NCBI GenBank assembly: GCA_965202585.1
Contig: OZ241832.1
Location: 46,996,001-47,060,000 of the forward strand
DNA length: 64,000 bases
Source of the DNA: Thalia democratica
Taxonomy: Eukaryota
Reading direction: 5' to 3'
The notes beneath the pieces were generated by a model. The model was not told the origin of the DNA. It searched no databases and saw only the letters and a list, made by a program, of their open reading frames with translations. Shown here one piece after another: positions 3,001 through 62,984 of this stretch (position 1 is the first letter of the stretch; every line of letters starts with the position of its first letter). Both the position numbers and the translations under genes were made by a program.

Positions 3001-4420
3001 TTTATTTTATCTTGTTTCAGAAAGTTATAACCAAACTTCAACTAAAACACAATTGAAAACATGCATTGCAATTTAAAACTCATAAAAAACATAAGCAAAA
3101 AATAGCATCAACAAGTATACAACTTATTACAACATGAACAAAAAAGAACAATTCGAATCCTTAACTTTAAAAAGCTTGCATTGTTTAGTTGATTTGACAT
3201 TGCTTATAGCTTTATCTAGTTAAAGCATCAACATTTAAATCAAACTAAATCAATTGGTACAAAAGAAGTAACAGGATGTTACCATTTAATTCTATCACTT
3301 TTTTACGGTACATATCACTAATTATCTAAACCACATATAACACAATTTGATAGCTTAAAACGGCATTAACAGTTTTTTTAACTATGCTTTTTTACAAACC
3401 TATGGCAATCTACCTATTTCTTTAACTAGCTTTTAATTTCTACTAAGCAGTTTTAAACTACCATTAACTAAACAAAATATGTGTACAATTTCAACAACTT
3501 TGTGCTGGTAAAAGATCAAAAGTAAGAGTTAGAGCTAGTTGAATGAAACATTTTACTTCTACATAACGTTTTTTAAGCTCCTTATATTGGCTTTTGCAAT
3601 TTTATCTAACCATTTTCAACTACTTTGAGAAAGGAGCTAGTTATGTTTTAAAAGTATTATTTAAATCGTTGAACAAGTTTTATAAATCAGTTATAATTGA
3701 ATGTTTCATAAAAAGCTTCAACTAACTTCAGTGTGTTGTCCGTAGGCTTTTTCTTAAAAACTTCTTTATTTACACTAAACTTATTCTCATATACGCTTAC
3801 TTTATATACTTGTTTTTTTTTTCATTAAATAACTGCTTAGTTTGTTTTTAAAAATTTGTTCTACGTCACTATAAGTAAAAATTATATTTTGAAATGAAAA
3901 TAAAACAGTTAGTTTTTATTTTATACTTTAAATAAACATGGTATTATTATTAAAAATTCTTGATCATTTAATTTAATTAAAAAAGTTTTATTAATCATAT
4001 TTGTTGAAATTAAACTAAAACTTAACATAAAAAACAGTTTCAAAGTTATACAACAAATAAATGTAAACAACTGTGATTGTTCAAAACAAAAAAAAATCAA
4101 AAGCATACAGTTTCAGTACAACTATCATTAAATCTTTCATTTTACAAACCCTAGACTTTTTTTTGAACTTAGTAGCTTATGGATTTTTCAAATAAAAACA
4201 TCGATGCATAAAAATACTAACAGCTGAAACGTTATGCAAAGGAAAAGAAGTATACAGCTTTGTAACTCAATTGAACACTATGTATGACACAACTTGATGA
4301 CTCAAAACTGCTGTAACTGTTTGTTTTAAGTTATGTTTTTTAAAAGTAAGATAAGTTTAAGATAAACGAAAAATGTATATGATCGGTATGAATCATTGGT
4401 CCAACATACAACAGCTCAAA
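1..4420 (+). repeat. Spacer made of ~5 diverged 0.9-1.2-kb subrepeats (present in every unit)
   Basis: Recurring ordered motifs: AGCTGAAACATGGTACA-like at ~231, ~1146, ~2056, ~3256, ~4222; ACAACTTGATGA-like; GAGCTAGTT; CTTACTTTG; TAYGTCAY at 799, 1686, 2677, 3862 followed by AATGAAAATAA. Confidence 0.8.
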
Positions 4421-4427
4421 AAGAAAA

Positions 4428-4537
4428 GCCTACGGCACGCGGTATTCCCAAGCGGTCACCCATCTAAGTACTAAGACACTGCTTAACTTCCCAGATCGGA
4501 CGAGATGGGGTGCGTTCAGTGTGGTATGGTCGTAGGC
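4428..4537 (-). rRNA. 5S: 5S rRNA gene with 8-nt internal deletion (110 nt; probable pseudogene or variant), unit 1
   Basis: Reverse complement GCCTACGACCATACCACACTGAACGCACCCCATCTCGTCCGATCTGGGAAGTTAAGCAGTGTC-TTAGTACTTAGATGGGTGACCGCTTGGGAATACCGCGTGCCGTAGGC aligns to canonical metazoan 5S, followed by Pol III terminator TTTTCTTTTT; TATAA-like element ~25 bp upstream. Confidence 0.93.
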
Positions 4538-5625
4538 GTCTAGCAGCGAAAAAAAGCGATTATAAACAAATAAGCTGTCTGAAACTTGTAGATTGTTTGC
4601 TTAAGTGTTTCATATGTTTAGAGCCCACTTTGTTCTAACTAATAAAGATAAACTAAGCCTTTCTAGTCTTTACTTTTCACATTTTTTTCTTAGCTTCAAG
4701 CTTCATAAAACTATTCAGCTATTGATTTTTAGTTGTTAGAGTACACAATATCATTACAGTGCAACGACATAGCAACATTATAAGACAGAAATTAACTAGT
4801 ACAACAGTTTAGAAAAGTTATTTCAAATACTTTTAACTGTGAAACTACATTTTTTTTACATAAACTTGTTGGCACTTTTTAAAATAAACCTACTTGCTTT
4901 TAACTTTTGAACGAGTTTTTATATGTACAGCGCGTTTTTGAGAAGGTAAGTGACTAGTATGTGCAAGAACAAACTAAAAACTTAAGTAGTTAAATTGAAT
5001 TAGATGGTTTAATTTAATTTTTAGTACTACCCTTTTTATTATGAGTAAATTTAAGGTATAACTAGTAAAATCACACAAAACGAATACTTGTGCATTTTTC
5101 GGATTTTTTTACAAATCAGCACAGTTTAAAATGTAATCAAGTTAAACATACTTCATGGGTTTTACGGTTAACAAAGCTGGCTGGAAATAAAATAATAAAA
5201 CTTTGCTTAAGCTTGAGATGAAAAAAACACTTAGCCTTGTCTAAAACTTTACTACTTTAAGCTTGCAGCTTAAGAAAACTAAGCCGGGTGTGTAGTAGTA
5301 TAATTTGTTTCATTTGAGGTTTATCTCACTAAATGGAGAGATGTGCTGTAGCATTTAGACTGTTTTTCTGGACCTTTAAAGCTAACCTTTAAAAAAAAAT
5401 TCACTTCTGGATCGGCCTAAGTCTTGTTTCTTTATCACTGGAACATTTTTAACATTAGTAGTAAAGCAACTTTGCTTTTATTAGTATACAGGCTTTAAAC
5501 TCACACGCTAATGCTCGTAACAATCAGTAAAAGGTACCTGAGAAAGCAAAACTGCTTAACAGTCAATTCGTCACAGTCAGTAACTGCTGAAAGTATTGTT
5601 TTGCTTTCTTTAATCAACATACAAA

Positions 5626-6210
5626 ATGTCTACAACAGCAGTAGCAGCACCATCAGCAGCGGCACCGGCCGCAGTTAAGGCCAGGTCTTCCAAAAGACCA
5701 AGCGCCAAGAAGGCAGAACACCCGAGTTACAGGGAAATGATCAGCTCTGCCCTGGGAGCAATGAAAGAACGAAAAGGTACATCCCGCCAGAAGATACAAA
5801 AGTTTATCGCGGAAACCTACAAGCTTGAGCTCTCAGCTTCTAATTCTCACTTGAAGAGAGCACTTACCAGCGGCGTGACCAAGGGTGCTTTTCTCCAGAC
5901 TACTGGAAAAGGCGCTTCTGGCTCGTTCAAGCTTGCTCCAATGCCAGCTGCTGGTCCCAAGAAGAGGACAAAAAAAGTAGCTAAAAAGCCAGCAGTAAAG
6001 AAGACCGCAGCTAAAAAACGAGTGAAGAAGTGTGCTCCCAAGAAGGCAGCAAAAAAACCAGCAGCCAAAAAGCGACCTGCTAAAAAGTGTGCTCCTAAGA
6101 AGGCAGCGTCTAAAAAAGCTGCAAGCAAGAAGAAGAAAGTAACAAAGAAGAAGCCGGCAGCCAAAAAAGCATCTAAGAAGGCAAGTACCAAGAAGAGCTG
6201 CAAGAAATAA
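5626..6210 (+). CDS. H1: Linker histone H1, 194 aa (unit 1)
   Basis: Winged-helix globular domain (HPSYREMI...GKGASGSFKL), Lys/Ala-rich tail, intronless, 3' stem-loop. Confidence 0.97.
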   Translation: MSTTAVAAPSAAAPAAVKARSSKRPSAKKAEHPSYREMISSALGAMKERKGTSRQKIQKFIAETYKLELSASNSHLKRALTSGVTKGAFLQTTGKGASGSFKLAPMPAAGPKKRTKKVAKKPAVKKTAAKKRVKKCAPKKAAKKPAAKKRPAKKCAPKKAASKKAASKKKKVTKKKPAAKKASKKASTKKSCKK

Positions 6211-6227
6211 GTTGTTCTTTTACCCAA

Positions 6228-6243
6228 GGTCCTTTTCAGGACC
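6228..6243 (+). terminator. Histone 3' stem-loop of H1 (repeated in each unit)
   Basis: GGTCCT-TTTC-AGGACC followed by ACTC. Confidence 0.95.
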
Positions 6244-6271
6244 ACTCTATTAAAGTATAAATAAAATTTAA

Positions 6272-6808
<537 letters not shown>

Positions 6809-6823
6809 CAATTGGCTTAAACC

Positions 6824-6839
6824 GGTCCTTTTCAGGACC
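6824..6839 (+). terminator. Histone 3' stem-loop of H3
   Basis: GGTCCT-TTTC-AGGACC followed by ACC; purine-rich GAAAATGAGA downstream (candidate U7 HDE). Confidence 0.95.
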
Positions 6840-6908
6840 ACCTTTAAACTTTGAAAATGAGACAACAACCAAACGAAAGAATGTAAATAAAAGATGTTTC
6901 TTTTTGGT

Positions 6909-7305
<397 letters not shown>

Positions 7306-7320
7306 ACAATTAGCGAACCC

Positions 7321-7336
7321 GGTCCTTTTTAGGACC
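7321..7336 (+). terminator. Histone 3' stem-loop of H4
   Basis: GGTCCT-TTTT-AGGACC followed by ACC. Confidence 0.95.
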
Positions 7337-7393
7337 ACCTATATCAATAAAATGTATTTTGGCAAACATTGACAAATTAAAGTAGCAGCTACG

Positions 7394-7444
7394 ATTTATG
7401 CAAATTAGCTTTTCGTTCGTCGCGGTTAGGTTTGAGTTGTATAT
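7394..7444 (+). promoter_or_regulatory. H2A promoter: extended octamer ATTTATGCAAATTAGC (7394-7409), weak TATAT (7440-7444)
   Basis: Exact motif match. Confidence 0.7.
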
Positions 7445-7486
7445 GCAGCTGTGCAAGTAACATTGCACAATCATTCGAACAACAAA

Positions 7487-7867
7487 ATGTCGGGACGTGG
7501 TAAAGGATCGAAACTCAAATCTAAGCCGAAGAGCAGGTCTTCTCGTGCAGGACTGCAGTTTCCAGTCGGTCGCGTGCACCGTCTGTTGCGCACTGGCAAC
7601 TACAGCCAAAGAGTCGGAGCCGGTGCTCCAGTTTATCTGGCTGCCGTTCTCGAGTACTTGAGCGCAGAAGTGCTCGAGCTTGCCGGTAACGCTGCTCGTG
7701 ACAACAAGAAAAGCAGGATCATTCCTCGCCATTTGCAACTAGCTATCCGCAACGACGAAGAGTTGAACAAACTTCTCGGAGGCGTCACTATTGCTCAAGG
7801 TGGTGTTCTTCCAAACATCCAGGCAGTATTATTGCCTAAGAAGACCGCTTCAAAAAAGTCCGCCTAA
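7487..7867 (+). CDS. H2A: Histone H2A, 126 aa (unit 1)
   Basis: MSGRGK...[11 protein letters not shown]...[20 protein letters not shown]; ATG at 7487 (ORF-track start 7451 is GTG). Confidence 0.98.
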
Positions 7868-7881
7868 GTTTAAACAAACCA

Positions 7882-7897
7882 GGTCCTTTTCAGGGCC
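7882..7897 (+). terminator. Histone 3' stem-loop of H2A
   Basis: GGTCCT-TTTC-AGGGCC (one G-U pair) followed by ACC. Confidence 0.93.
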
Positions 7898-7948
7898 ACC
7901 TAAAACATTTACTACAAACGAGAGAAGCGATCGTTCGCGTACGGAACT

Positions 7949-7978
7949 GCTAATTTGCATAAATTTTCAGTATATATA
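7949..7978 (+). promoter_or_regulatory. H2B promoter: reverse extended octamer GCTAATTTGCATAAAT (7949-7964), TATATATA (7971-7978)
   Basis: ATTTGCAT immediately upstream of TATA, the classic H2B promoter arrangement. Confidence 0.85.
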
Positions 7979-8009
7979 CCAGCGCTGAGACTCAAGTTCA
8001 CACATCATT

Positions 8010-8369
8010 ATGACAGCTACCAAAGGCGCGAAGAAATCAGTAGCCAAGACCACCCCGGTCGACGGCAAGAGGAAGCGAAGGAGGAGGCACAAACAAAGTT
8101 TTGGCATTTACGTGTACAAAGTTTTGAAGCAAGTGCACCCCGACACCGGAATCTCCAGCAAGGCGATGGGAATCATGAACTCATTTGTCAACGACATCTT
8201 CGAGCGCATTGCAGCAGAGGCTTCACGTTTGGCTCATTACAACAAGAGGTCAACTGTGAGCAGCCGCGAAATTCAAACTGCTGTCAGGCTCTTGCTCCCC
8301 GGCGAGTTGTCAAAGCACGCAGTTTCAGAAGGAACTAAAGCTGTTACCAAATACACCAGCTCAAAATAA
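8010..8369 (+). CDS. H2B: Histone H2B, 119 aa (unit 1)
   Basis: [18 protein letters not shown]...AVTKYTSSK. Confidence 0.98.
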
Positions 8370-8398: not shown

Positions 8399-11300
8399 AC
8401 CATTTGAATAAAACCAGCTATTAGATAACTTAAGTAAAAATTGCCTTTACAGTAATACCAACATATTGATATTTATACAAATTAAAAGCCCATATAAAAA
8501 GACAAACTATTTTGTCCTACTCAACTCTTACGTTATGGAATAAATCTAACATGAAAAAAGTAGTAGTAGTAGTACTGGCAATAAAAATATTTGCAAAAAA
8601 GGTTTAACTAACTTGAATATGTTGTCCGTAAGTTATTTTCTTCTTAACGTTTTTTATACAGAAAACTACATCTTATTCATTTGTTGAACTTCTGTTAAAA
8701 CATTCAGTAAGTAAGTATATTCGTTTTTAAAAAAACTTTATGTTCAACTTATAACAAAAAAAACTTAGTTTTAGTTATCATTTTAAGTTTTTGTTGTTTG
8801 TAAGTAACACAATGAGCTTTAACTTTTTAAATGTGTTCTTCTTAACATTTTGAATGCGATTGAAACCGTGGAACACGTTTTTGAAAGTACAAAAATGGAA
8901 GTAAAAGTTCAAAACAAAAATAACAAGTGTGATTTTTTAGTACAGTTAATTATTCCTTCTTACAAAGCTAACATAAACTTAGCTTGTTTAGATATATTGT
9001 CAAGTTAAAACGCCACCATATGAAACAAGTCAATTCATTAGCTGAAACATGGTACAAAAGAAAAAAAGTAACAGCTTGTACCACTTGTTTCATATATTTT
9101 AAGGTAAAAACTAGATATGATACAACTTGATGACCTAAAACAACTATAATGCTTTAGTTTAGTTTATATTTGCCTTAAATCTAAAGTAATCAGGACAACC
9201 AATTGATTTAACCAGCTACTAGAGTCTCTAAACTGTGTCAACCAAGCCTTAATAAAACGACAAAATGTACAAACTTTAATCTACATTGTGTTGGTGGGTT
9301 AAAAGTTAGTATATTTGGATAATACAGTTTACTTATGAGTGATAATATCCCTGTTTTACCAGTTAGTTACACTTACTATAGTTTTTTTTTTACTTTTACT
9401 TGATGAAACTCTTTTTGAGAAAGAGCTAGTTATGTTTTGAAATCATTGCTTAAACTGTGGAATAATATTTAGTATCTAAGTGTTAGGTAAAAATTTCCAT
9501 AGGCATTTTCTTGTTTAAACAAAACTTGTTTTGATTCATTCTACTTTGTGGACTTGTTTTTCAAACATTTAAAAAAATTTAATTTTGTTTATTAAAAGAA
9601 ATAGTGCTATGTCACTTAAAAGTAAAAATAAAAGTTTGAATGAAAATAATACATTCAATTACAATGAGAGGTATGTAATAATATATACTTACTTGACTCA
9701 ATTACAGCAACTAAACTTGGATTTTATTTTCAAAATGTATTAATCTTGTTAATAAGAATGCAACTGAAACCGTTAAAAAATTATTAAAAGTTGTACAATT
9801 CATTTATGTAAAAAACAGCGTTTTTTCAAAACAAACATTCAATTTAAGTATAACAACAATTTAACATACTGTTGAAATATTTGTATTAACCTTAGGATTG
9901 TTGTGTTCAACTCAAATTGTTAGTGGCTTTATCAAATAAAAACAACTACACATAAAAACATGATACAAAGAAAAAAACTTGTTACCATTTTTTGTATCTC
10001 GTTTTTAAACTGTACATGAGACAAATAAAAACTACTGTAATCATTCTTTCCATAAGTCTAAAGCTTACGTGCACCACCAATCAGTTATACAAGCTGCTAA
10101 TGTCTACTAAACTCACACAATTTCATTCTTAATCCACTTTATGCTTATAAACGATCCAAGAACACCACATCTCACTTTAAATCTATATTTTATCGCTTTC
10201 CATTGTTAATTAAATAGTTAAGCTTGCTATGATTTCTCCACTTTTACTTTGTTTTTGATGTAACTTCTACGAAGGAAACTAGTGTGAACACTGCTCTAAT
10301 CCTTAACTCATTGCTTAAGGTACTTGAATGCTTAGTGAAAATCTTTAACTAACTTGAACGTGTTTTTCGTGTTCTTTTTCTTGTTATCTCATTTAATCAA
10401 GGAACTCATTCTTACTCATGCTTACTTTGTGGACTTTTATTCGTTTATCATTCAATAAATATTTGTTTTTTAGTTTATTAAAATAAAGTTATGCTACGTC
10501 ACTGTAAAAACTAGTTATATTTTTTAATGAAAATAATAAAAATAAAACTTCACTGAATTATTAATAGAAAATGTTTTCAACTTTTAACAACAAAAAAAAA
10601 TGTTAACGTTCCATAAAAAGTATTGTTCAATTACAATCAAAAACATGCATAGCTATTCAAAATTCATACATGACAATACATAAATGTAAACAACATCGAT
10701 TGTTCAAAAGAAACATAATACTATCAACAAGCACACAATTGACCAAAACAAAAACAGCTTAGATAAATGATGAAAGTGTATACCTAAAACTATAATTTTC
10801 CAAAGACGACATCTATTTATTAGGTTGCTTTACTAGTCAAACATATGAAACAAACCAATTCATTAGCTGAAACATGGTACACAGGAAAAGAAGTAACAGC
10901 TTCTTACCATTCATTTGTGTTACTTGTTACAACTGTATGTGAGACAACTTGATGATTTAAAACGACTTAAACAGTTTGTCATTAGTTATTTTTGTTATAA
11001 ATGTAAAGTCATCAGGACCACCACTTAATTTAACCACTTACTAATGCCCACAAAGCAGTGTAAAACAAGCTCTAACTAAAAGACAAAAATGTACCAAACT
11101 TAATGTTCCTTTTGCTGGTGAAAGCCCAAAAGCAAGGTAAAAGGTCAGTTAGAATATTTGTATAACACACTTTACTTAAAGTTTTACTTTTATGTTTTAT
11201 TTTTTAGTCACTTTGTTGTACTTACAATTGTTTTGGTTCTCTTACATGACATCTTAAACTACTTGTGAGGATGGAGCTAGTTGCAATTAAAAAGCATCGC

Positions 11301-13236
11301 TTAAGTCTCTTACGCTACATGTAATTAAACTTTTGCAGAAAGCTTTAACTAACTTGATTTTTGTGTCCATAGGATTTTCTCGTTAAGTTCTTTTTTTAAA
11401 CAATACTTATTCCCACTATGCTTACTTTGTTTACTTCTTTTTGCAATATCTAACAAATACTTAGTTTATCTAAAAAAAAAAATTCTACGTCATCGTAAAA
11501 AATATGTTATATTTTTAAATGAAAATAATACATTAAATTGTAACAAAATAAGCTTAACTTTTTTTATTATAAAAAAATATATCATCAATAGCTTCTAGAA
11601 TTTTTTATCAGTATTTATTGCATGTATTTCAAACTATATAAAACAGTTTAGAGTTGTAAAATATACATGTGTAAACAACAGTAGATGTTCAAGTCAAAAT
11701 GAAAATTATTAAAAAACTTGCGATTACAGTACAACAATCATGAAGTAACACGACCAAAATCTTTTTACAAAACTTAAAACTGTTTTATTGAACTCAAATT
11801 GTTCACAGCTTTATTTTATCTTGTTTCAGAAAGTTATAACCAAACTTCAACTAAAACACAATTGAAAACATGCATTGCAATTTAAAACTCATAAAAAACA
11901 TAAGCAAAAAATAGCATCAACAAGTATACAACTTATTACAACATGAACAAAAAAGAACAATTCGAATCCTTAACTTTAAAAAGCTTGCATTGTTTAGTTG
12001 ATTTGACATTGCTTATAGCTTTATCTAGTTAAAGCATCAACATTTAAATCAAACTAAATCAATTGGTACAAAAGAAGTAACAGGATGTTACCATTTAATT
12101 CTATCACTTTTTTACGGTACATATCACTAATTATCTAAACCACATATAACACAATTTGATAGCTTAAAACGGCATTAACAGTTTTTTTAACTATGCTTTT
12201 TTACAAACCTATGGCAATCTACCTATTTCTTTAACTAGCTTTTAATTTCTACTAAGCAGTTTTAAACTACCATTAACTAAACAAAATATGTGTACAATTT
12301 CAACAACTTTGTGCTGGTAAAAGATCAAAAGTAAGAGTTAGAGCTAGTTGAATGAAACATTTTACTTCTACATAACGTTTTTTAAGCTCCTTATATTGGC
12401 TTTTGCAATTTTATCTAACCATTTTCAACTACTTTGAGAAAGGAGCTAGTTATGTTTTAAAAGTATTATTTAAATCGTTGAACAAGTTTTATAAATCAGT
12501 TATAATTGAATGTTTCATAAAAAGCTTCAACTAACTTCAGTGTGTTGTCCGTAGGCTTTTTCTTAAAAACTTCTTTATTTACACTAAACTTATTCTCATA
12601 TACGCTTACTTTATATACTTGTTTTTTTTTTCATTAAATAACTGCTTAGTTTGTTTTTAAAAATTTGTTCTACGTCACTATAAGTAAAAATTATATTTTG
12701 AAATGAAAATAAAACAGTTAGTTTTTATTTTATACTTTAAATAAACATGGTATTATTATTAAAAATTCTTGATCATTTAATTTAATTAAAAAAGTTTTAT
12801 TAATCATATTTGTTGAAATTAAACTAAAACTTAACATAAAAAACAGTTTCAAAGTTATACAACAAATAAATGTAAACAACTGTGATTGTTCAAAACAAAA
12901 AAAAATCAAAAGCATACAGTTTCAGTACAACTATCATTAAATCTTTCATTTTACAAACCCTAGACTTTTTTTTGAACTTAGTAGCTTATGGATTTTTCAA
13001 ATAAAAACATCGATGCATAAAAATACTAACAGCTGAAACGTTATGCAAAGGAAAAGAAGTATACAGCTTTGTAACTCAATTGAACACTATGTATGACACA
13101 ACTTGATGACTCAAAACTGCTGTAACTGTTTGTTTTAAGTTATGTTTTTTAAAAGTAAGATAAGTTTAAGATAAACGAAAAATGTATATGATCGGTATGA
13201 ATCATTGGTCCAACATACAACAGCTCAAAAAGAAAA

Positions 13237-13346
13237 GCCTACGGCACGCGGTATTCCCAAGCGGTCACCCATCTAAGTACTAAGACACTGCTTAACTTCC
13301 CAGATCGGACGAGATGGGGTGCGTTCAGTGTGGTATGGTCGTAGGC
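13237..13346 (-). rRNA. 5S: 5S rRNA gene with 8-nt deletion, unit 2
   Basis: Identical to unit 1 copy. Confidence 0.93.
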
Positions 13347-20100: not shown

Positions 20101-22045
20101 AAGCATCGCTTAAGTCTCTTACGCTACATGTAATTAAACTTTTGCAGAAAGCTTTAACTAACTTGATTTTTGTGTCCATAGGATTTTCTCGTTAAGTTCT
20201 TTTTTTAAACAATACTTATTCCCACTATGCTTACTTTGTTTACTTCTTTTTGCAATATCTAACAAATACTTAGTTTATCTAAAAAAAAAAATTCTACGTC
20301 ATCGTAAAAAATATGTTATATTTTTAAATGAAAATAATACATTAAATTGTAACAAAATAAGCTTAACTTTTTTTATTATAAAAAAATATATCATCAATAG
20401 CTTCTAGAATTTTTTATCAGTATTTATTGCATGTATTTCAAACTATATAAAACAGTTTAGAGTTGTAAAATATACATGTGTAAACAACAGTAGATGTTCA
20501 AGTCAAAATGAAAATTATTAAAAAACTTGCGATTACAGTACAACAATCATGAAGTAACACGACCAAAATCTTTTTACAAAACTTAAAACTGTTTTATTGA
20601 ACTCAAATTGTTCACAGCTTTATTTTATCTTGTTTCAGAAAGTTATAACCAAACTTCAACTAAAACACAATTGAAAACATGCATTGCAATTTAAAACTCA
20701 TAAAAAACATAAGCAAAAAATAGCATCAACAAGTATACAACTTATTACAACATGAACAAAAAAGAACAATTCGAATCCTTAACTTTAAAAAGCTTGCATT
20801 GTTTAGTTGATTTGACATTGCTTATAGCTTTATCTAGTTAAAGCATCAACATTTAAATCAAACTAAATCAATTGGTACAAAAGAAGTAACAGGATGTTAC
20901 CATTTAATTCTATCACTTTTTTACGGTACATATCACTAATTATCTAAACCACATATAACACAATTTGATAGCTTAAAACGGCATTAACAGTTTTTTTAAC
21001 TATGCTTTTTTACAAACCTATGGCAATCTACCTATTTCTTTAACTAGCTTTTAATTTCTACTAAGCAGTTTTAAACTACCATTAACTAAACAAAATATGT
21101 GTACAATTTCAACAACTTTGTGCTGGTAAAAGATCAAAAGTAAGAGTTAGAGCTAGTTGAATGAAACATTTTACTTCTACATAACGTTTTTTAAGCTCCT
21201 TATATTGGCTTTTGCAATTTTATCTAACCATTTTCAACTACTTTGAGAAAGGAGCTAGTTATGTTTTAAAAGTATTATTTAAATCGTTGAACAAGTTTTA
21301 TAAATCAGTTATAATTGAATGTTTCATAAAAAGCTTCAACTAACTTCAGTGTGTTGTCCGTAGGCTTTTTCTTAAAAACTTCTTTATTTACACTAAACTT
21401 ATTCTCATATACGCTTACTTTATATACTTGTTTTTTTTTTCATTAAATAACTGCTTAGTTTGTTTTTAAAAATTTGTTCTACGTCACTATAAGTAAAAAT
21501 TATATTTTGAAATGAAAATAAAACAGTTAGTTTTTATTTTATACTTTAAATAAACATGGTATTATTATTAAAAATTCTTGATCATTTAATTTAATTAAAA
21601 AAGTTTTATTAATCATATTTGTTGAAATTAAACTAAAACTTAACATAAAAAACAGTTTCAAAGTTATACAACAAATAAATGTAAACAACTGTGATTGTTC
21701 AAAACAAAAAAAAATCAAAAGCATACAGTTTCAGTACAACTATCATTAAATCTTTCATTTTACAAACCCTAGACTTTTTTTTGAACTTAGTAGCTTATGG
21801 ATTTTTCAAATAAAAACATCGATGCATAAAAATACTAACAGCTGAAACGTTATGCAAAGGAAAAGAAGTATACAGCTTTGTAACTCAATTGAACACTATG
21901 TATGACACAACTTGATGACTCAAAACTGCTGTAACTGTTTGTTTTAAGTTATGTTTTTTAAAAGTAAGATAAGTTTAAGATAAACGAAAAATGTATATGA
22001 TCGGTATGAATCATTGGTCCAACATACAACAGCTCAAAAAGAAAA

Positions 22046-22155
22046 GCCTACGGCACGCGGTATTCCCAAGCGGTCACCCATCTAAGTACTAAGACACTGC
22101 TTAACTTCCCAGATCGGACGAGATGGGGTGCGTTCAGTGTGGTATGGTCGTAGGC
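22046..22155 (-). rRNA. 5S: 5S rRNA gene with 8-nt deletion, unit 3
   Basis: Identical to unit 1 copy. Confidence 0.93.
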
Positions 22156-28900: not shown

Positions 28901-30853
28901 GCAATTAAAAAGCATCGCTTAAGTCTCTTACGCTACATGTAATTAAACTTTTGCAGAAAGCTTTAACTAACTTGATTTTTGTGTCCATAGGATTTTCTCG
29001 TTAAGTTCTTTTTTTAAACAATACTTATTCCCACTATGCTTACTTTGTTTACTTCTTTTTGCAATATCTAACAAATACTTAGTTTATCTAAAAAAAAAAA
29101 TTCTACGTCATCGTAAAAAATATGTTATATTTTTAAATGAAAATAATACATTAAATTGTAACAAAATAAGCTTAACTTTTTTTATTATAAAAAAATATAT
29201 CATCAATAGCTTCTAGAATTTTTTATTAGTATTTATTGCATGTATTTCAAACTATATAAAACAGTTTAGAGTTGTAAAATATACATGTGTAAACAACAGT
29301 AGATGTTCAAGTCAAAATGAAAATTATTAAAAAACTTGCGATTACAGTACAACAATCATGAAGTAACACGACCAAAATCTTTTTACAAAACTTAAAACTC
29401 TTTTATTGAACTCAAATTGTTCACAGCTTTATTTTATCTTGTTTCAGAAAGTTATAACCAAACTTCAACTAAAACACAATTGAAAACATGCATTGCAATT
29501 TAAAACTCATAAAAAACATAAGCAAAAAATAGCATCAACAAGTATACAACTTATTACAACATGAACAAAAAAGAACAATTCGAATCCTTAACTTTAAAAA
29601 GCTTGCATTGTTTAGTTGATTTGACATTGCTTATAGCTTTATCTAGTTAAAGCATCAACATTTAAATCAAACTAAATCAATTGGTACAAAAGAAGTAACA
29701 GGATGTTACCATTTAATTCTATCACTTTTTTACGGTACATATCACTAATTATCTAAACCACATATAACACAATTTGATAGCTTAAAACGGCATTAACAGT
29801 TTTTTTAACTATGCTTTTTTACAAACCTATGGCAATCTACCTATTTGTTTAACTAGCTTTTAATTTCTACTAAGCAGTTTTAAACTACCATTAACTAAAC
29901 AAAATATGTGTACAATTTCAACAACTTTGTGCTGGTAAAAGATCAAAAGTAAGAGTTAGAGCTAGTTGAATGAAACATTTTACTTCTACATAACGTTTTT
30001 TAAGCTCCTTATATTGGCTTTTGCAATTTTATCTAACCATTTTCAACTACTTTGAGAAAGGAGCTAGTTATGTTTTAAAAGTATTATTTAAATCGTTGAA
30101 CAAGTTTTATAAATCAGTTATAATTGAATGTTTCATAAAAAGCTTCAACTAACTTCAGTGTGTTGTCCGTAGGCTTTTTCTTAAAAACTTCTTTATTTAC
30201 ACTAAACTTATTCTCATATACGCTTACTTTATATACTTGTTTTTTTTTTCATTAAATAACTGCTTAGTTTGTTTTTAAAAATTTGTTCTACGTCACTATA
30301 AGTAAAAATTATATTTTGAAATGAAAATAAAACAGTTAGTTTTTATTTTATACTTTAAATAAACATGGTATTATTATTAAAAATTCTTGATCATTTAATT
30401 TAATTAAAAAAGTTTTATTAATCATATTTGTTGAAATTAAACTAAAACTTAACATAAAAAACAGTTTCAAAGTTATACAACAAATAAATGTAAACAACTG
30501 TGATTGTTCAAAACAAAAAAAATCAAAAGCATACAGTTTCAGTACAACTATCATTAAATCTTTCATTTTACAAACCCTAGACTTTTTTTTGAACTTAGTA
30601 GCTTATGGATTTTTCAAATAAAAACATCGATGCATAAAAATACTAACAGCTGAAACGTTATGCAAAGGAAAAGAAGTATACAGCTTTGTAACTCAATTGA
30701 ACACTATGTATGACACAACTTGATGACTCAAAACTGCTGTAACTGTTTGTTTTAAGTTATGTTTTTTAAAAGTAAGATAAGTTTAAGATAAACGAAAAAT
30801 GTATATGATCGGTATGAATCATTGGTCCAACATACAACAGCTCAAAAAGAAAA

Positions 30854-30963
30854 GCCTACGGCACGCGGTATTCCCAAGCGGTCACCCATCTAAGTACTAA
30901 GACACTGCTTAACTTCCCAGATCGGACGAGATGGGGTGCGTTCAGTGTGGTATGGTCGTAGGC
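30854..30963 (-). rRNA. 5S: 5S rRNA gene with 8-nt deletion, unit 4
   Basis: Identical to unit 1 copy. Confidence 0.93.
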
Positions 30964-33356: not shown

Positions 33357-33882
<526 letters not shown>

Positions 33883-37300: not shown

Positions 37301-39250
37301 ATTAAAAAGCATCGCTTAAGTCTCTTACGCTACATGTAATTAAACTTTTGCAGAAAGCTTTAACTAACTTGATTTTTGTGTCCATAGGATTTTCTCGTTA
37401 AGTTCTTTTTTTAAACAATACTTATTCCCACTATGCTTACTTTGTTTACTTCTTTTTGCAATATCTAACAAATACTTAGTTTATCTAAAAAAAAAAATTC
37501 TACGTCATCGTAAAAAATATGTTATATTTTTAAATGAAAATAATACATTAAATTGTAACAAAATAAGCTTAACTTTTTTTATTATAAAAAAATATATCAT
37601 CAATAGCTTCTAGAATTTTTTATTAGTATTTATTGCATGTATTTCAAACTATATAAAACAGTTTAGAGTTGTAAAATATACATGTGTAAACAACAGTAGA
37701 TGTTCAAGTCAAAATGAAAATTATTAAAAAACTTGCGATTACAGTACAACAATCATGAAGTAACACGACCAAAATCTTTTTACAAAACTTAAAACTCTTT
37801 TATTGAACTCAAATTGTTCACAGCTTTATTTTATCTTGTTTCAGAAAGTTATAACCAAACTTCAACTAAAACACAATTGAAAACATGCATTGCAATTTAA
37901 AACTCATAAAAAACATAAGCAAAAAATAGCATCAACAAGTATACAACTTATTACAACATGAACAAAAAAGAACAATTCGAATCCTTAACTTTAAAAAGCT
38001 TGCATTGTTTAGTTGATTTGACATTGCTTATAGCTTTATCTAGTTAAAGCATCAACATTTAAATCAAACTAAATCAATTGGTACAAAAGAAGTAACAGGA
38101 TGTTACCATTTAATTCTATCACTTTTTTACGGTACATATCACTAATTATCTAAACCACATATAACACAATTTGATAGCTTAAAACGGCATTAACAGTTTT
38201 TTAACTATGCTTTTTTACAAACCTATGGCAATCTACCTATTTGTTTAACTAGCTTTTAATTTCTACTAAGCAGTTTTAAACTACCATTAACTAAACAAAA
38301 TATGTGTACAATTTCAACAACTTTGTGCTGGTAAAAGATCAAAAGTAAGAGTTAGAGCTAGTTGAATGAAACATTTTACTTCTACATAACGTTTTTTAAG
38401 CTCCTTATATTGGCTTTTGCAATTTTATCTAACCATTTTCAACTACTTTGAGAAAGGAGCTAGTTATGTTTTAAAAGTATTATTTAAATCGTTGAACAAG
38501 TTTTATAAATCAGTTATAATTGAATGTTTCATAAAAAGCTTCAACTAACTTCAGTGTGTTGTCCGTAGGCTTTTTCTTAAAAACTTCTTTATTTACACTA
38601 AACTTATTCTCATATACGCTTACTTTATATACTTGTTTTTTTTTTCATTAAATAACTGCTTAGTTTGTTTTTAAAAATTTGTTCTACGTCACTATAAGTA
38701 AAAATTATATTTTGAAATGAAAATAAAACAGTTAGTTTTTATTTTATACTTTAAATAAACATGGTATTATTATTAAAAATTCTTGATCATTTAATTTAAT
38801 TAAAAAAGTTTTATTAATCATATTTGTTGAAATTAAACTAAAACTTAACATAAAAAACAGTTTCAAAGTTATACAACAAATAAATGTAAACAACTGTGAT
38901 TGTTCAAAACAAAAAAAAATCAAAAGCATACAGTTTCAGTACAACTATCATTAAATCTTTCATTTTACAAACCCTAGACTTTTTTTTGAACTTAGTAGCT
39001 TATGGATTTTTCAAATAAAAACATCGATGCATAAAAATACTAACAGCTGAAACGTTATGCAAAGGAAAAGAAGTATACAGCTTTGTAACTCAATTGAACA
39101 CTATGTATGACACAACTTGATGACTCAAAACTGCTGTAACTGTTTGTTTTAAGTTATGTTTTTTAAAAGTAAGATAAGTTTAAGATAAACGAAAAATGTA
39201 TATGATCGGTATGAATCATTGGTCCAACATACAACAGCTCAAAAAGAAAA

Positions 39251-39360
39251 GCCTACGGCACGCGGTATTCCCAAGCGGTCACCCATCTAAGTACTAAGAC
39301 ACTGCTTAACTTCCCAGATCGGACGAGATGGGGTGCGTTCAGTGTGGTATGGTCGTAGGC
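39251..39360 (-). rRNA. 5S: 5S rRNA gene with 8-nt deletion, unit 5
   Basis: Identical to unit 1 copy. Confidence 0.93.
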
Positions 39361-46100: not shown

Positions 46101-48029
46101 TCTTACGCTACATGTAATTAAACTTTTGCAGAAAGCTTTAACTAACTTGATTTTTGTGTCCATAGGATTTTCTCGTTAAGTTCTTTTTTTAAACAATACT
46201 TATTCCCACTATGCTTACTTTGTTTACTTCTTTTTGCAATATCTAACAAATACTTAGTTTATCTAAAAAAAAAAATTCTACGTCATCGTAAAAAATATGT
46301 TATATTTTTAAATGAAAATAATACATTAAATTGTAACAAAATAAGCTTAACTTTTTTTATTATAAAAAAATATATCATCAATAGCTTCTAGAATTTTTTA
46401 TTAGTATTTATTGCATGTATTTCAAACTATATAAAACAGTTTAGAGTTGTAAAATATACATGTGTAAACAACAGTAGATGTTCAAGTCAAAATGAAAATT
46501 ATTAAAAAACTTGCGATTACAGTACAACAATCATGAAGTAACACGACCAAAATCTTTTTACAAAACTTAAAACTCTTTTATTGAACTCAAATTGTTCACA
46601 GCTTTATTTTATCTTGTTTCAGAAAGTTATAACCAAACTTCAACTAAAACACAATTGAAAACATGCATTGCAATTTAAAACTCATAAAAAACATAAGCAA
46701 AAAATAGCATCAACAAGTATACAACTTATTACAACATGAACAAAAAAGAACAATTCGAATCCTTAACTTTAAAAAGCTTGCATTGTTTAGTTGATTTGAC
46801 ATTGCTTATAGCTTTATCTAGTTAAAGCATCAACATTTAAATCAAACTAAATCAATTGGTACAAAAGAAGTAACAGGATGTTACCATTTAATTCTATCAC
46901 TTTTTTACGGTACATATCACTAATTATCTAAACCACATATAACACAATTTGATAGCTTAAAACGGCATTAACAGTTTTTTTAACTATGCTTTTTTACAAA
47001 CCTATGGCAATCTACCTATTTGTTTAACTAGCTTTTAATTTCTACTAAGCAGTTTTAAACTACCATTAACTAAACAAAATATGTGTACAATTTCAACAAC
47101 TTTGTGCTGGTAAAAGATCAAAAGTAAGAGTTAGAGCTAGTTGAATGAAACATTTTACTTCTACATAACGTTTTTTAAGCTCCTTATATTGGCTTTTGCA
47201 ATTTTATCTAACCATTTTCAACTACTTTGAGAAAGGGGCTAGTTATGTTTTAAAAGTATTATTTAAATCGTTGAACAAGTTTTATAAATCAGTTATAATT
47301 GAATGTTTCATAAAAAGCTTCAACTAACTTCAGTGTGTTGTCCGTAGGCTTTTTCTTAAAAACTTCTTTATTTACACTAAACTTATTCTCATATACGCTT
47401 ACTTTATATACTTGTTTTTTTTTTCATTAAATAACTGCTTAGTTTGTTTTTAAAAATTTGTTCTACGTCACTATAAGTAAAAATTATATTTTGAAATGAA
47501 AATAAAACAGTTAGTTTTTATTTTATACTTTAAATAAACATGGTATTATTATTAAAAATTCTTGATCATTTAATTTAATTAAAAAAGTTTTATTAATCAT
47601 ATTTGTTGAAATTAAACTAAAACTTAACATAAAAAACAGTTTCAAAGTTATACAACAAATAAATGTAAACAACTGTGATTGTTCAAAACAAAAAAAAATC
47701 AAAAGCATACAGTTTCAGTACAACTATCATTAAATCTTTCATTTTACAAACCCTAGACTTTTTTTTGAACTTAGTAGCTTATGGATTTTTCAAATAAAAA
47801 CATCGATGCATAAAAATACTAACAGCTGAAACGTTATGCAAAGGAAAAGAAGTATACAGCTTTGTAACTCAATTGAACACTATGTATGACACAACTTGAT
47901 GACTCAAAACTGCTGTAACTGTTTGTTTTAAGTTATGTTTTTTAAAAGTAAGATAAGTTTAAGATAAACGAAAAATGTATATGATCGGTATGAATCATTG
48001 GTCCAACATACAACAGCTCAAAAAGAAAA

Positions 48030-48139
48030 GCCTACGGCACGCGGTATTCCCAAGCGGTCACCCATCTAAGTACTAAGACACTGCTTAACTTCCCAGATCG
48101 GACGAGATGGGGTGCGTTCAGTGTGGTATGGTCGTAGGC
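48030..48139 (-). rRNA. 5S: 5S rRNA gene with 8-nt deletion, unit 6
   Basis: Identical to unit 1 copy. Confidence 0.93.
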
Positions 48140-49234
48140 GTCTAGCAGCGAAAAAAAGCGATTATAAACAAATAAGCTGTCTGAAACTTGTAGATTGTTT
48201 GCTTAAGTGTTTCATATGTTTAGAGCCCACTTTGTTCTAACTAATAAAGATAAACTAAGCCTTTCTAGTCTTTACTTTTCACATTTTTTTCTTAGCTTCA
48301 AGCTTCATAAAACTATTCAGCTATTGATTTTTAGTTGTTAGAGTACACAATATCATTACAGTGCAACGACATAGCAACATTATAAGACAGAAATTAACTA
48401 GTACAACAGTTTAGAAAAGTTATTTCAAATACTTTTAACTGTGAAACTACATTTTTTTTACATAAACTTATTGGCACTTTTTAAAATAAACCTACTTGCT
48501 TTTAACTTTTGAACGAGTTTTTATATGTACAGCGCGTTTTTGAGAAGGTAAGTGACTAGTATGTGCAAGAACAAACTAAAAACTTAAGTAGTTAAATTGA
48601 ATTAGATGGTGTAATTAATTTTTTAGTACTACCCTTTTTATTATGAGTAAATTTAAGGTAAATGATAACTAATAAAATCACACAAAACGAATACTTGTGT
48701 ATTTTTCGGATTTTTTTTTACAAATCAGCACAGTTTAAAATGTAATTAATTTAAACATACTTCATGGGTTTTACGATTAACAAAGCTGGCTGGAAATAAA
48801 ATAATAAAACTTTGCTTAAGCTTGAGATGAAAAAAACACTTGTCCTTGTCTAAAACTTCACTACTTTAAGCTTCCAGCTTAAGAAAACTAAGCCGGGTGT
48901 GTAGTAGTATAATTTGTTTTATATGTGGTTTACCTCACTAAATGGAGAGATGTGCTGTAGCATTTAGACTGTTTTTCTGGACCTTTAAAGCTAACCTTTA
49001 AAAAAAAATTCACTTCTGAATCGGATTAATTCTTGTTTCTTTATCACTGGAACATTTTTAACATTAGTAGTAAAGCAACTTTGCTTTTATTAGCATACAG
49101 GCTTTAAACTCACACGCTAATGCTCGTAACAATCAGTAAAAGGTACCTGAGAAAGCAAAACTGCTCAACAGTCAATTCGTCACAGTCAGTAACTGCTGAA
49201 AGTATTGTTTTGCTTTCTTTAATCAACATACAAA

Positions 49235-49819
49235 ATGTCTACAACAGCAGTAGCAGCACCATCAGCAGCGGCACCGGCCGCAGTTAAGGCCAGGTCTTCC
49301 AAAAGACCAAGCGCCAAGAAGGCAGAACACCCGAGTTACAGGGAAATGATCAGCTCTGCCCTGGGAGCAATGAAAGAACGAAAAGGTACATCCCGCCAGA
49401 AGATACAAAAGTTTATCGCGGAAACCTACAAGCTTGAGCTCTCAGCTTCTAATTCTCACTTGAAGAGAGCACTTACCAGCGGCGTGACCAAGGGTGCTTT
49501 TCTCCAGACTACTGGAAAAGGCGCTTCTGGCTCGTTCAAGCTTGCTCTAATGCCAGCTGCTGGTCCCAAGAAGAGGACAAAAAAAGTAGCTAAAAAGCCA
49601 GCAGTAAAGAAGACCGCAGCTAAAAAACGAGTGAAGAAGTGTGCTCCCAGGAAGGCAGCAAAAAAACCAGCAGCCAAAAAGCGACCTGCTAAAAAGTGTG
49701 CTCCTAAGAAGGCAGCGTCTAAAAAAGCTGCAAGCAAGAAGAAGAAAGTAACAAAGAAGAAGCCGGCAGCCAAAAAAGCATCTAAGAAGGCAAGTACCAA
49801 GAAGAGCTGCAATAAATAA
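49235..49819 (+). CDS. H1: Terminal divergent histone H1 (three missense changes; damaged stem-loop, possibly pseudogenising)
   Basis: Intact 194-codon ORF; P>L, K>R, K>N versus other copies; stem-loop GGTCCTTTTCAGAACC. Confidence 0.85.
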   Translation: MSTTAVAAPSAAAPAAVKARSSKRPSAKKAEHPSYREMISSALGAMKERKGTSRQKIQKFIAETYKLELSASNSHLKRALTSGVTKGAFLQTTGKGASGSFKLALMPAAGPKKRTKKVAKKPAVKKTAAKKRVKKCAPRKAAKKPAAKKRPAKKCAPKKAASKKAASKKKKVTKKKPAAKKASKKASTKKSCNK

Positions 49820-49879
49820 GTTGTTCTTTGACCCAAGGTCCTTTTCAGAACCACTCAATTAAAGTACAAAAAATTTTTT

Positions 49880-50282
49880 AAAAAGTAACAGCTTGTACCA
49901 CTTGTTTCAAATTTCTTAAAGTAAAAACAAGATATGAGACAACTTGATGACCTAGAGCAACTATAATGCTTTAGTTTAGTTTATATTTGTCCTAAATCTA
50001 AAGTATTTAGGACAACTAATTGATTTAACAGCTACTAGAGTCTCTAAACAGTCTCAAACAAGCCTTATAAAACGAAAAAAATGTACAAACCTTAATCTAC
50101 ATTGTGTTGGTGGATTAACAGTTAGTATATTTGAATAATACATTTTACTCATGAGTGATAATATCCCTGTTTTCCTGTCTTACCAGTTAGTTACACTTAC
50201 TATAGTTTTTTTTTTACTTTTACTTGATAAAACTCTTTTTGAGAAAGAACTAGTTATGTTTTGAAATCATTGCTTAAACTGT
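49880..50282 (+). repeat. Diverged fragment of the array spacer (unit positions ~254-649) marking the array end
   Basis: AAAAAGTAACAGCTTGTACCAC...GCTTAAACTGT; roughly 10% mismatches by eye plus a small insertion. Confidence 0.9.
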
Positions 50283-52630
50283 AGTAAAGTATATAGCTAA
50301 AAGTATGCGGGTATCTACTTTAATATTAACTGTTTATAAATTGTTTAGGATGAACTTTTTCTTTTTTGTATAATAACGACCTTTAAATAACAAGTTTCAA
50401 ATAAAATCAGGCTTTTTAAAAGTAAGATTTTTTATTTCAACAAACATCCTCTCCAAAGAAGACACAATACCATGATAAAATAAAATAAAACTAAAATATA
50501 AATATACAATACCCTCTAATCCTGGTCACACGTCATTCATAATTAAATAAATAGTCAATAACATTTAAATGGATGCTGAAAGTCCTATCAACCAAACAAA
50601 ACATACTTTAAATAATTAAATGGTTTTTGTAAACTAGACATCCTTACTAAAAAACACCATAAATTTAACCATAAAATGTATGTCGTAAATTAACAAGATA
50701 ACCTTAAAAGACATGGTTAGAAAAAAATTAAATTAATGTTTAGGCCTGAGCTATCCAGAAAAGATTTTACTGAACTGAGGTGACCTGAGAAAAACCTTAC
50801 TAAAATAAATGAAATGAGTTACCTATAAGGAAATTTACTTTTTATATTCTTGCAAGAAATAGCCAAAAAAGTTATTTGAACCGAAGTAGGTTCACGAGCA
50901 AAGATAAACTACTGTAGTGATAAACTAAATATATGATGATAAATTAAGAGCAGTTATGCAAACCGTTGAGATTAAACGCCTTAACTAATCACTTAATTTT
51001 ATTTGAGAGTGTAACAAATATAATCTATCCTACTTTTATACTGTGTTCAAAACTCTATCTTTAAAAGGGCTTTTATAAGTCGCGGACGTGAAATATTTTC
51101 CATAGAATAAATTGAACTAGGTCCGCAGTTATAAAAAAAAAGTTATTGCCCTTAATTAATAGTAACAATGATCTAATACTAAATAATAAGGTGACTTTTG
51201 TTAAACTGCAGTAAACTTTTTTTTATTCAGTGTTCCTGAACTTTCTTTAAGTTTGATTTCTAATAAAATATCTGTTCAAAAACTATAAAAAAGCTGTAAT
51301 TTATAAACTTTGAAACTTTATAAAATATATACTGTTTAATTTTATACATTTTTTCTTTCTTATTTATATGAAGCTGAGAAGTTTGTTTTCGTATCGCATG
51401 TGCATTATTCTATAAAATCATTATTATTTTTTTTATAATTTTTAAACTGTAAGATAGAACAACCAAAAAGATTTTCTTTAACTAAAAATAAAAACTGGTA
51501 AAGACTTTTACACTTTAGAGTTTTATAAGCTATAAAATAATAACTTAGGTATAAAAAGTCATAAACTCATTTAAAAAAATAATATGTTAAATGGATTAAA
51601 GAATTTTCTTGAAACCCATAAAATCGATAATTTATATTTCAAATAATAACAAAAAACTAATACTGGTGAAAACTTTGAAATCCATCAATGTTCGTATTTT
51701 ACAACAATCTAGTTAGAAAATTACTTGTCAGACTCTTAAAACGAATAATGATTGTTTTTGAAAAATACAAAGTAAAAAAAACCAACATTATTACTAAAAA
51801 TGTGTTTGAATACTAGTATTCAGAAATGTTAAACTCAAGTGTCATAAACAAGTATACCTGCTCTGTAGGCAAGAGCATCTCCTACATAGAAAAAAAAATA
51901 TCGGACAAATATTTTGAAGAGTTGCTGTTTTTTAGTGCTATACCGTGTTAAAATTCAAACATAGAGAATAACTTGAAATTTCTAGAGGTGTGTTCGAAGT
52001 GAGTTTAGAATTTAGAATTAATGTCAGTCGTAAAAGAAAAACCGAAGTTAAACTTACAAGTAACCGCAAATTGAAAGATAAGTTAATTGACATTAAAATA
52101 ACTTACACTCGTTTTAAACTTTAGACTGCTTGCTTTTTTATAACCTTGTACGTGTTACGCCCTATTCTATTTTTATTTAAATTTTCTTCTAAACAGTTTA
52201 ACATTTCATTTAACTTTTGAAAAATAAATGAGTATTATTCAAAAAGCTTAAAGTGATCTATAGAATCCAAAAAGGCCCGAACCGGCTGGGTCTAACCGAA
52301 GTCTTAAGATTTAGTAGATCACTACTAACTAGTTTTGGTTCAGTTATATATTAAATAAGTTAAATAAACTTTCTTAATTTGAAATTTGTTTATTTACTTT
52401 TAAGCAAGCTTTTATTTAAAAATATTTTTTCCCTGTAACATCGATTTTCTTGCACAAATACGCTGATATTTACAAAGTAATTGAATTTTAAAACTTACAG
52501 TTCCGTATTAATCTTGACAATGGTTATAAAGTATAAAACATTCTTTTGGATATTTGTTAACATAAATTTTGCTAGATTATTCTGCCAAATTGCGAAAATT
52601 TCTACTTTTATTTATGCAAAGGTTTCAAAA

Positions 52631-54401
52631 TATTTTTCCTTTAATCATCTTTAACTGAATTACAAGTTTACTTTTGGAGGTAATTTATTTATTCTTCATA
52701 AACTGATGTACCAAAGGAAGGTTAGAAATACTCTACTTAAATAAAATGTTAACACAACACAAATGCTTTTCAATGTTTCAAAGTAAGTTTTAATTTGATC
52801 AATAAATTTAAATGCTAGATAACGTTTAAAATTTGTAGAACCGCTCAGTTCCAACCCGCGATCAACTCCCACCTGCGCATAATTCCCACCCGCACAATTC
52901 AAAATTGATCAAATCTGAGAACCGACCAAGGGTAAGGGTTAAGGGTAACAGTGATAAAAAAAAAAGATCAATAAGTAAAGACAAAAAAAAGGTGGGAGTT
53001 GTACGTGGGTGGAAAGTGTGCGGGTGGAAATTGATCATGGGTAGGAATTGTAAGTTTACCAAAATGTTGATATTTATTTTGAAACATAACGTTTCCAACA
53101 CAAATAGATTTGTAAAATATTTCATACAAATAAAAACTAGATATTTAGCCATTAACCTTTGTTTATTTCTTTATTTGGAAAACAACAAGTTAACAGTAAA
53201 GAAAACGGTATAGGCAAACTACTCAATTTTAAAAATACCATTTAGTTTATTATTTGTATGATATAGCGCTTAAATTTTATTAAGTTACAGTTTTTATTTA
53301 ATAGTGCTCTCTCTCTCTCTGATATGACGTCACAACAAAGCTCTATCGTTTGTGATGTCACAACAGTAAACATCTAAGTTGTAGCTTACACACTTAAAAA
53401 CATATTTAAAATCTGCGATGAAATCTCAAGATCATACTTTTAGGGATCATTTCTAAAGTATGTGTCTCACGAATGTTATTTAACAATGACGGTCAACCAC
53501 TCACGATGATGAATTGTGGAGAGGTTTTCTGAGCAGGAAAATGACTTCAGCTTGCTGAGTGTCGTAATGACTGTTCCACTGTTGTTAAGGCAGCAGTGGA
53601 GGGAAATCGCTCTTTCTGAGTGACCAACAACCAGCCTAGTGGGGCTATATATTATCGTTTAAAATCACAAGAAAACTTTTATATGTTGTTATAAGCTTAT
53701 TTTCAAACATGATATAATTAGGTATAAATTAAAATTTTATTAAATAATACGAATATTTAGATTATTTTATATTAGCTACAAATGCCTTTTTTTGTATTAT
53801 GTTTGATAAACTTTTTATAAAGTAATTTATGCTTTAATTTGAAGTAAGGAAATCTTTGCTTCTCCAGAGAAAACTTAATAATGCAAAAAATCAATTGCTT
53901 TAAACTATAATATTTTTTAATGCAAAAGAAACTATTTTCATTTACTATGAGTAACATTTTTTAATTTATTGCAAAAAAGTTTCCCATAGAAACGTACATG
54001 GATCAGAATAGACTTTTAAACAAAGCTCGCCGCTAAATTTTGTAGTTAATTTTATGAATAAGATCTGATTCAAACATCAGGTGAGATCCTTCTTTTAGGG
54101 GACGAATCAGATTGTGCTTCGTGCCTTTCTGCGTAACAAGAATTTCGGCAAGACACGTTTCACACATCAAGTTATGTGTTCAAACCGTCTTCATTTCCGT
54201 TCACCTTGTAGAAGGATCTAACTAACATGAGTTGCATGTATTAATGTTTGATATTCTGAATGCTAACGTTCGTGTGAAGCTTTATGACGTCATAAAGAAA
54301 GAGAGTACATGATAACAGAAGAGATTAGCATACTTTATGCACTGCACAGTGCGGGAGCCGATCATTTCTACCCCGATCATTTCTAACATGATCACTTCTA
54401 A
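52631..54401 (+). repeat. Left arm of ~1.8-kb inverted duplication
   Basis: Reverse complement of 60974-62731; mirrored ORFs (e.g. 53772..53957- and 61418..61603+). Confidence 0.92.
52853..53051. mobile_element. ~200-bp MITE/HINE-like element with inverted ~15-bp subrepeats and a telomere-like core
   Basis: GATCAACTCCCACC/AATTCCCACCCGCAC on the left, GGTGGGAGTTG/GTGCGGGTGGAAATT on the right, central AGGGTAAGGGTTAAGGGTAA. Confidence 0.5.
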
Positions 54402-54792: not shown

Positions 54793-55131
54793 ATCATTTC
54801 TAACTCGCTATCATTTTTAACCCGATCATTACTAACCCGATCATTTCTAACCCGGTCACTTATAACCAGATCATTTCTAACTCGATTACTTCTAATCTGG
54901 TCACTTCTAACCCGATAATGTATAAGTCGATCACTTATAACTCGATAATTTCTTACCCGATCACTTCCAACCCGATCATTTCTAATAAGATATTTTCGAA
55001 TAAGATCATTTCTAACCCACTTTAACCCAATCATTTCTAACCCGGTCATTTATAACCCGATCATATTTAACCCGATCATCACTAATCCGATCGTTTTTAA
55101 CCTGATCTAACCCGACAATTGTTAACCTGAT
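54793..55131 (+). repeat. 15-bp tandem array (ATCATTTCTAACCCG)n
   Basis: About 20 degenerate units. Confidence 0.92.
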
Positions 55132-62731: not shown

Positions 62732-62984
62732 CAAGTTAGAAATGATCGGGTTAGAAATAATCGCAGGGTAAACCGCACAGTGTACAATGACATATATTTT
62801 ATATTCAAATTAGCTTCCGAATCCTATGTAAATTTTAAAATTTTCTCGCAATATTTAGTGTAAGCTTCAAAACCCTCCTCAAATACGGTTGGGACTTTTT
62901 TTAAGCACCCCGTTAAGACCGCTGCTCTAAAATTTTCTATGCCATATAATAATAACGAGAAAGAGCTAAAACAAGCGGGAGCTG

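Follow-up and report, generated by a model that had tools for sequence, protein, structure and literature searches.

A probable 5S rRNA pseudogene carried in every unit of a tandem histone array

Introduction

What is a 5S rRNA-like gene that lacks part of its internal promoter doing in every unit of a histone array? The 64-kb window studied here (we use the term for the whole stretch of DNA that was analysed) contains six units of a tandem histone repeat, and each unit carries one 5S-like gene from which the same eight nucleotides are absent. A preliminary description had offered two explanations, a dead 5S gene fixed by the concerted evolution of the array or a 5S-derived element co-opted as a Pol III/TFIIIC barrier or a short non-coding RNA. 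5S genes within tandem histone repeats have been recorded in Artemia, Mytilus, Hydractinia and Potamopyrgus (PMC13525598, PMC5011920), and there, as here, one 5S gene occurs per histone quintet unit, in tandem; unlike the linked 5S genes of those animals, that of the window array is internally deleted. We found no paper on histone-5S linkage in tunicates.

Results

The Rfam family RF00001 matches the window six times, always on the minus strand, in each case over 111 nt (rather than the 110 nt first described) and with 72.4 bits across model positions 1-120. This is above the gathering score of 38, compared with 111.9 bits for an intact relative described below. All six copies, together with 80 nt of flank on either side, are 100% identical to each other, and they occur at a density of one per histone unit, in six of six units (Table 1). 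The 5S gene had been placed next to the H1 promoter; in fact 1,089 nt separate its start from the H1 ATG, and the two genes are divergently oriented. No tRNA or other Pol III gene was found within the histone unit.

Table 1. Coordinates in the window of the 5S-like genes, their flanking signals and associated features of the histone array
Feature	Position	Strand	Basis
5S-like gene copy 1, without positions 64-71	4427..4537	-	Rfam RF00001, 72.4 bits; aligned with intact relative
5S-like gene copy 2, identical to copy 1	13236..13346	-	Rfam; copy comparison
5S-like gene copy 3, identical to copy 1	22045..22155	-	Rfam; copy comparison
5S-like gene copy 4, identical to copy 1	30853..30963	-	Rfam; copy comparison
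5S-like gene copy 5, identical to copy 1	39250..39360	-	Rfam; copy comparison
5S-like gene copy 6, identical to copy 1, within the truncated last unit	48029..48139	-	Rfam; copy comparison
Deletion junction GUGUC/UUAGU; GGGCGCGG present here in intact relatives	4474..4475	-	Alignments with relatives; contigs of runs X7 and X13 cross without the 8 nt
T4-C-T5 run at the 3' end, Pol III terminator-like signal	4418..4427	-	Sequence, alignment
Upstream GTTTATAAT (TATAAT at -27 to -22, 4559-4564), common to all three array types	4559..4567	-	Alignment
Conserved 22-nt block AGAACAAAGTGRGCTCTRAACA, ~80-100 nt upstream of the 5S start	4616..4637	-	Alignment of three array types
Site of ~1 kb of 5S-H1 spacer missing in every window unit, present in all related contigs	4793..4794		Contig alignments
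Unit 1 histone genes: H1 5626-6210, H3 6398-6808, H4 6994-7305, H2A 7487-7867, H2B 8010-8369	5626..8369	+	ORFs, Pfam, 3' stem-loops

The Rfam alignment has no nucleotides for the 5' strand of helix V, which would lie between GCAGUGUC and UUAGUAC. What has been lost is GGGCGCGG, corresponding to positions 64-71 of the Xenopus/human numbering, and the junction can be placed unambiguously. Rfam and the alignment with an intact 119-nt relative agree on this loss in all six window copies, and both the deletion itself and its position over the 5' strand of helix V and the intermediate element were correctly identified in the preliminary description. Compared with the intact relative, no change is seen in the orphaned 3' partner strand ACCGCGUGCC or in boxes A and C, and the upstream TATAA-like element and the T-run terminator noted earlier are retained. 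By analogy with the 5S genes of other animals, the upstream GTTTATAAT may serve as a promoter element. Farther upstream, the block AGAACAAAGTGRGCTCTRAACA is kept in three of three array types despite 23-28% divergence of the surrounding flanks, and it is a possible upstream control element.

Could the gap be an error of assembly or polishing? The identity of the six copies could in principle reflect a collapsed consensus. However, the units carry distinct private variants and are hence uncollapsed, and the site is not a homopolymer. The 5S-H1 spacer occurs in twenty public runs, drawn from nine studies; two come from labelled organisms (organism A, run X7, and organism B, run X13) and the majority are marine metagenomes. 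The contigs of these runs, all of them Logan contigs, which show presence only, were aligned on positions 4300-4700 of the window. In organism B the junction is spanned by a 377-nt contig (X13 record 3, 4424-4700) that lacks the 8 nt. The same holds for an 80-nt contig of organism A (X7 record 11, 4424-4504); it has no mismatches but extends just 30 letters past the junction on one side, one letter fewer than a bridging record requires. The depth of the latter (3402) is that of the flanking contigs (about 3300 and 3144). With the junction crossed in two runs from two studies, an error is highly improbable.

Positions 67-72 are described as the intermediate element of the TFIIIA-bound internal control region, with box A on one side of it and box C on the other (Pieler 1987, as cited in PMC8789306; PMC3123226). 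Five of the six bases of this element are gone from the window copies, and boxes A and C stand 8 bp closer together, so that the gene no longer has a complete type 1 internal promoter. Mutational work in Xenopus indicates that such a lesion should cut transcription strongly, perhaps not to zero. Folding, which the preliminary description had proposed as a check, indicates that the deleted RNA would keep helices I-III and lose its third arm, with a fold no better than that of shuffled sequences (z -0.37, compared with -2.54 for the intact form). Neither helix V nor the loop E region can form, which should rule out a ribosomal role. From its sequence, the deleted gene has presumably lost both transcription and ribosomal function.

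The H1 protein of the window falls in a 90% cluster whose members all come from marine metagenome assemblies. Contigs with the window's exact H1 (L011-L016) stop short of the 5S gene, as they either keep a ~1 kb spacer or start too late. Four contigs with a sister H1 (L001-L004), which share ~88% identity with the window over H1-H3 and ~77% over the 5S flanks, encode a 119-nt 5S at the homologous place and in the same orientation. It scores 111.9 bits with almost every model pair intact, and folds into the canonical three-arm structure (-44.9 kcal/mol, z -2.5). Compared with the 5S of L001, the window copy lacks GGGCGCGG and has one substitution, at position 25 (G in the window, A in L001). 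The lesion is thus one clean 8-nt deletion, and the window copy derives by a disabling lesion from a gene whose counterpart in a sister array type is still intact. The earlier claim that every histone-linked 5S copy is deleted therefore stands for the six window copies and fails beyond them.

A third array type, with an H1 of 190 aa, carries a 123-nt 5S of 84.1 bits (L017:1551-1673 and L018:1551-1673) in which the same helix V segment is damaged in another way. Here GGGCUUAAAGG stands in place of GGGCGCGG, and AAGCAG has become AAAAAAG (an inserted A, G to A and C to A), with the changes falling at positions 54-57. By manual comparison, a contig of depth 1686 in organism A carries most of the upstream variants of this type, and the resemblance indicates that array types coexist in one organism. 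Two array types are damaged within the same short segment, positions 54-71, which is somewhat unexpected for random decay. Further members of the H1 cluster (L019-L027) yielded no additional 5S copies. JGI metagenome contigs scanned with a gapped pattern for the deleted, intact and L017-type forms gave no match, nor did they when scanned with the junction alone. Eight spurious ORFs around the 5S gene were looked up as a route to further contigs and none of the eight is in the collection; no ORF spans the deletion junction.

The histone units are 8,397-8,809 bp each, with a 3' stem-loop behind each histone gene. H1 and the 5S-like gene are found in all six units, and H3, H4, H2A and H2B in units 1-5, where some are broken. 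Whole units differ by 0-8 mismatches per 8.8 kb (99.9% identity). Because this identity runs from end to end, the deletion in the six copies represents one event rather than independent ones, and the sharing of the lesion reflects homogenisation of whole units rather than constraint specific to the site. By the same token, the uniformity of the 5S copies needs no selection, and is uninformative about whether selection acts on 5S.

The decaying end of the array falls within the window. In unit 4 (33420-33882), a 411-bp deletion equivalent to 7095-7505 of unit 1 fuses H4 and H2A. Unit 5 has lost 7 nt of H4 (~41862, equivalent to 7039-7045 of unit 1) and 23 nt of H2B (~42909, equivalent to 8093-8115 of unit 1), and since both losses shift the frame, it contains two dead core histone genes. 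Unit 6 (48029-50296) is 97.8% like unit 1 up to a point shortly after H1 (about 49882), where a 90%-alike segment of spacer (equivalent to 9063-9472) takes over before the array ends. The broken state of units 4, 5 and 6 indicates that dead members are tolerated in this array. Another loss is shared by all window units, that of the 5S-H1 spacer segment, which in the relatives occupies L011:220-1286, L001:1870-2871 and L017:1862-2813, stretches that are mutually homologous (65-76%); on these alignments it is a second derived deletion of the window array.

Just past the end of the array are two near-identical U3 snoRNA genes (117 bits), inverted and 8 kb apart (53428-53624 on the plus strand and 61751-61947 on the minus strand). 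Between and beside them occur 15-nt tandem repeats containing TAACCC (54793-55107 and 62984-63368) and repeats of 41-42 nt.

How old is the lesion? The flanks of the array types are 23-28% divergent (23% between the window and the intact type). Their 5S bodies differ by 1-4 substitutions, compared with 25-33 expected at the flank rate (P at most 3.5e-8), and identity extends as a block from +1 to +119. Conservation of this kind relative to the flanks implies that the bodies were selected, or homogenised with working copies, for nearly all of the time since the types split, and the lesions are thus late. The single substitution between the window and intact-type bodies, where about 25 would be expected at the flank rate, accords with the earlier suggestion of a recent lesion; as sequence comparison goes, near-identity outside the lesion fits a recent lesion, and also fits continuing constraint or gene conversion.

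Changes that followed the deletion are seen in the labelled organisms. Deleted-type contigs of organisms A and B have lost one more base at 4465 (ACUU(A)GAUGG, box C/loop E), and in organism B the deleted-type 5S also has an A>G change at 4526 in loop A; at both positions the window keeps the ancestral state (A at 4465). The 127 nt of 3' flank are identical to the window in both the A and B runs, as is the 5' flank 4538-4611 in organism A. The pattern suggests relaxed constraint after the deletion, on small numbers and with a part of the 5' flank (4580-4700) that is repeated elsewhere, as its raised depth and several variants indicate, which spoils a comparison of body and flank rates.

Might the 111-nt RNA nevertheless be a working variant of the ribosomal 5S in this species? 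The flanking signals are intact, and nothing beyond this speaks for it. Against it are the loss of helix V and the collapse of the third arm, the canonical form of the gene in a close relative, and the abundance of other 5S sequence in the same runs. The summed word depth of the two halves of the 5S body is 190-245 thousand in X7 and 50-150 thousand in X13, compared with 3.3 thousand and 2.4-3.2 thousand for the flanks; 5S-like word depth overall, a contig depth and not a copy number, is roughly 15-70 times the flank depth of the window array. Depth dips in the bin of the junction, where contigs of other 5S forms stop aligning. Of the loose contig ends, two at 4475 in X13 have the intact-type sequence GGGCGTGG (RNA sense), and others in the runs differ in their 5' and 3' flanks. 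Clearly, the deleted type makes up a minority of the 5S-like sequence, and the runs suggest that intact 5S copies occur within the same genome. We regard a ribosomal role for the deleted form as extremely improbable.

Contigs of the metatranscriptome run X20 contained nothing on the 5S stretch 4300-4700, which is no proof of absence. One contig of run X21 is 85% alike and comes from another 5S.

Discussion

So, is the 111-nt element dead or retained for another purpose? We consider it probably a recently inactivated 5S rRNA pseudogene that was fixed in the array by concerted evolution, one of the two explanations originally offered. This fits the intact copy of the sister array, the 99.9% identity of the units, the dead genes at the array edge, the lesions that followed, and the excess of other 5S sequence. 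The ancestor would have been an ordinary 5S gene of 119 nt, placed in the histone-repeat spacer and divergent from H1. A single 8-bp deletion of positions 64-71 would have removed the 5' strand of helix V and, in the same event, the intermediate element, drawing box A 8 bp nearer to box C. Unequal crossing-over and gene conversion may then have spread the lesion through this array type, and would keep the 8.8-kb unit uniform. The spread would have been unopposed because the cell draws its 5S supply from other, far more numerous copies.

Alternatively, the deleted gene may have been retained in a non-ribosomal role, either as a TFIIIA/TFIIIC/Pol III-bound barrier near H1 or as the source of a short 5S-derived RNA with helices I-III. 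In its favour, the window copies retain box A, box C, the upstream TATAAT and the T-run terminator, the 5S body outside the lesions has changed much less than the flanks (1-3 substitutions where about 25 are expected), and the lesions of the two array types are confined to positions 54-71. However, the intermediate element is gone, and both the extra base lost from box C in organisms A and B and the loop A change in B argue against constraint after the deletion. Nor is the distance between 5S and H1 kept, the spacer being 1.1 or 2.1 kb, and homogenisation alone explains the uniformity of the array. No RNA from the element appeared in the metatranscriptome contigs examined, to be read with the caution given above. 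Co-option as first proposed thus gained no positive evidence and was weakened by the box C loss and the variable spacer, and we consider it unlikely. A broader version seems quite improbable: that the linked 5S genes across the histone-array families of this genome are kept as 5S-derived Pol III elements, with the helix V/intermediate-element segment repeatedly disabled and the rest preserved. If this were true, the elements could act as TFIIIC/TFIIIA-bound boundaries of histone units or give rise to a truncated 5S-like RNA.

A pseudogene in each repeat of the Xenopus oocyte 5S genes is a classic case of its kind. More generally, the homogenisation of 5S pseudogenes within clusters is a standard element of the mixed concerted/birth-and-death model (PMC3123226), and the probable pseudogene of the window resembles these cases in that a non-functional copy is homogenised within its own cluster and paralogous clusters differ. 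It is unlike them in two respects: the damage amounts to one clean 8-bp deletion, the gene being otherwise unchanged, and the repeat that carries it belongs to a histone array, not a 5S array. A 5S copy inside the repeat of another tandem gene family also has a parallel in the NOR-5S of turtles and crocodiles, which is 119 bp long, has a recognisable intermediate element and box C, and is expressed and found in ribosomes (PMC8789306). Unlike the NOR-5S, the window copy lacks the intermediate element and helix V, and is known here from DNA alone.

Because linkage of 5S to histone genes and homogenised 5S pseudogenes are both of known kinds, the deleted histone-linked copy is a modest addition to them, and its importance would rise only if RNA or ChIP showed the disabled copies to be still in use. 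The finding does record 5S-histone linkage in what is probably a pelagic tunicate. Should the pseudogene reading hold, it would also provide a clean and datable case of birth-and-death inside a concertedly evolving array, in which an 8-bp deletion hitch-hikes across a histone repeat and sister arrays retain a 5S copy that is either working or damaged in a different way.
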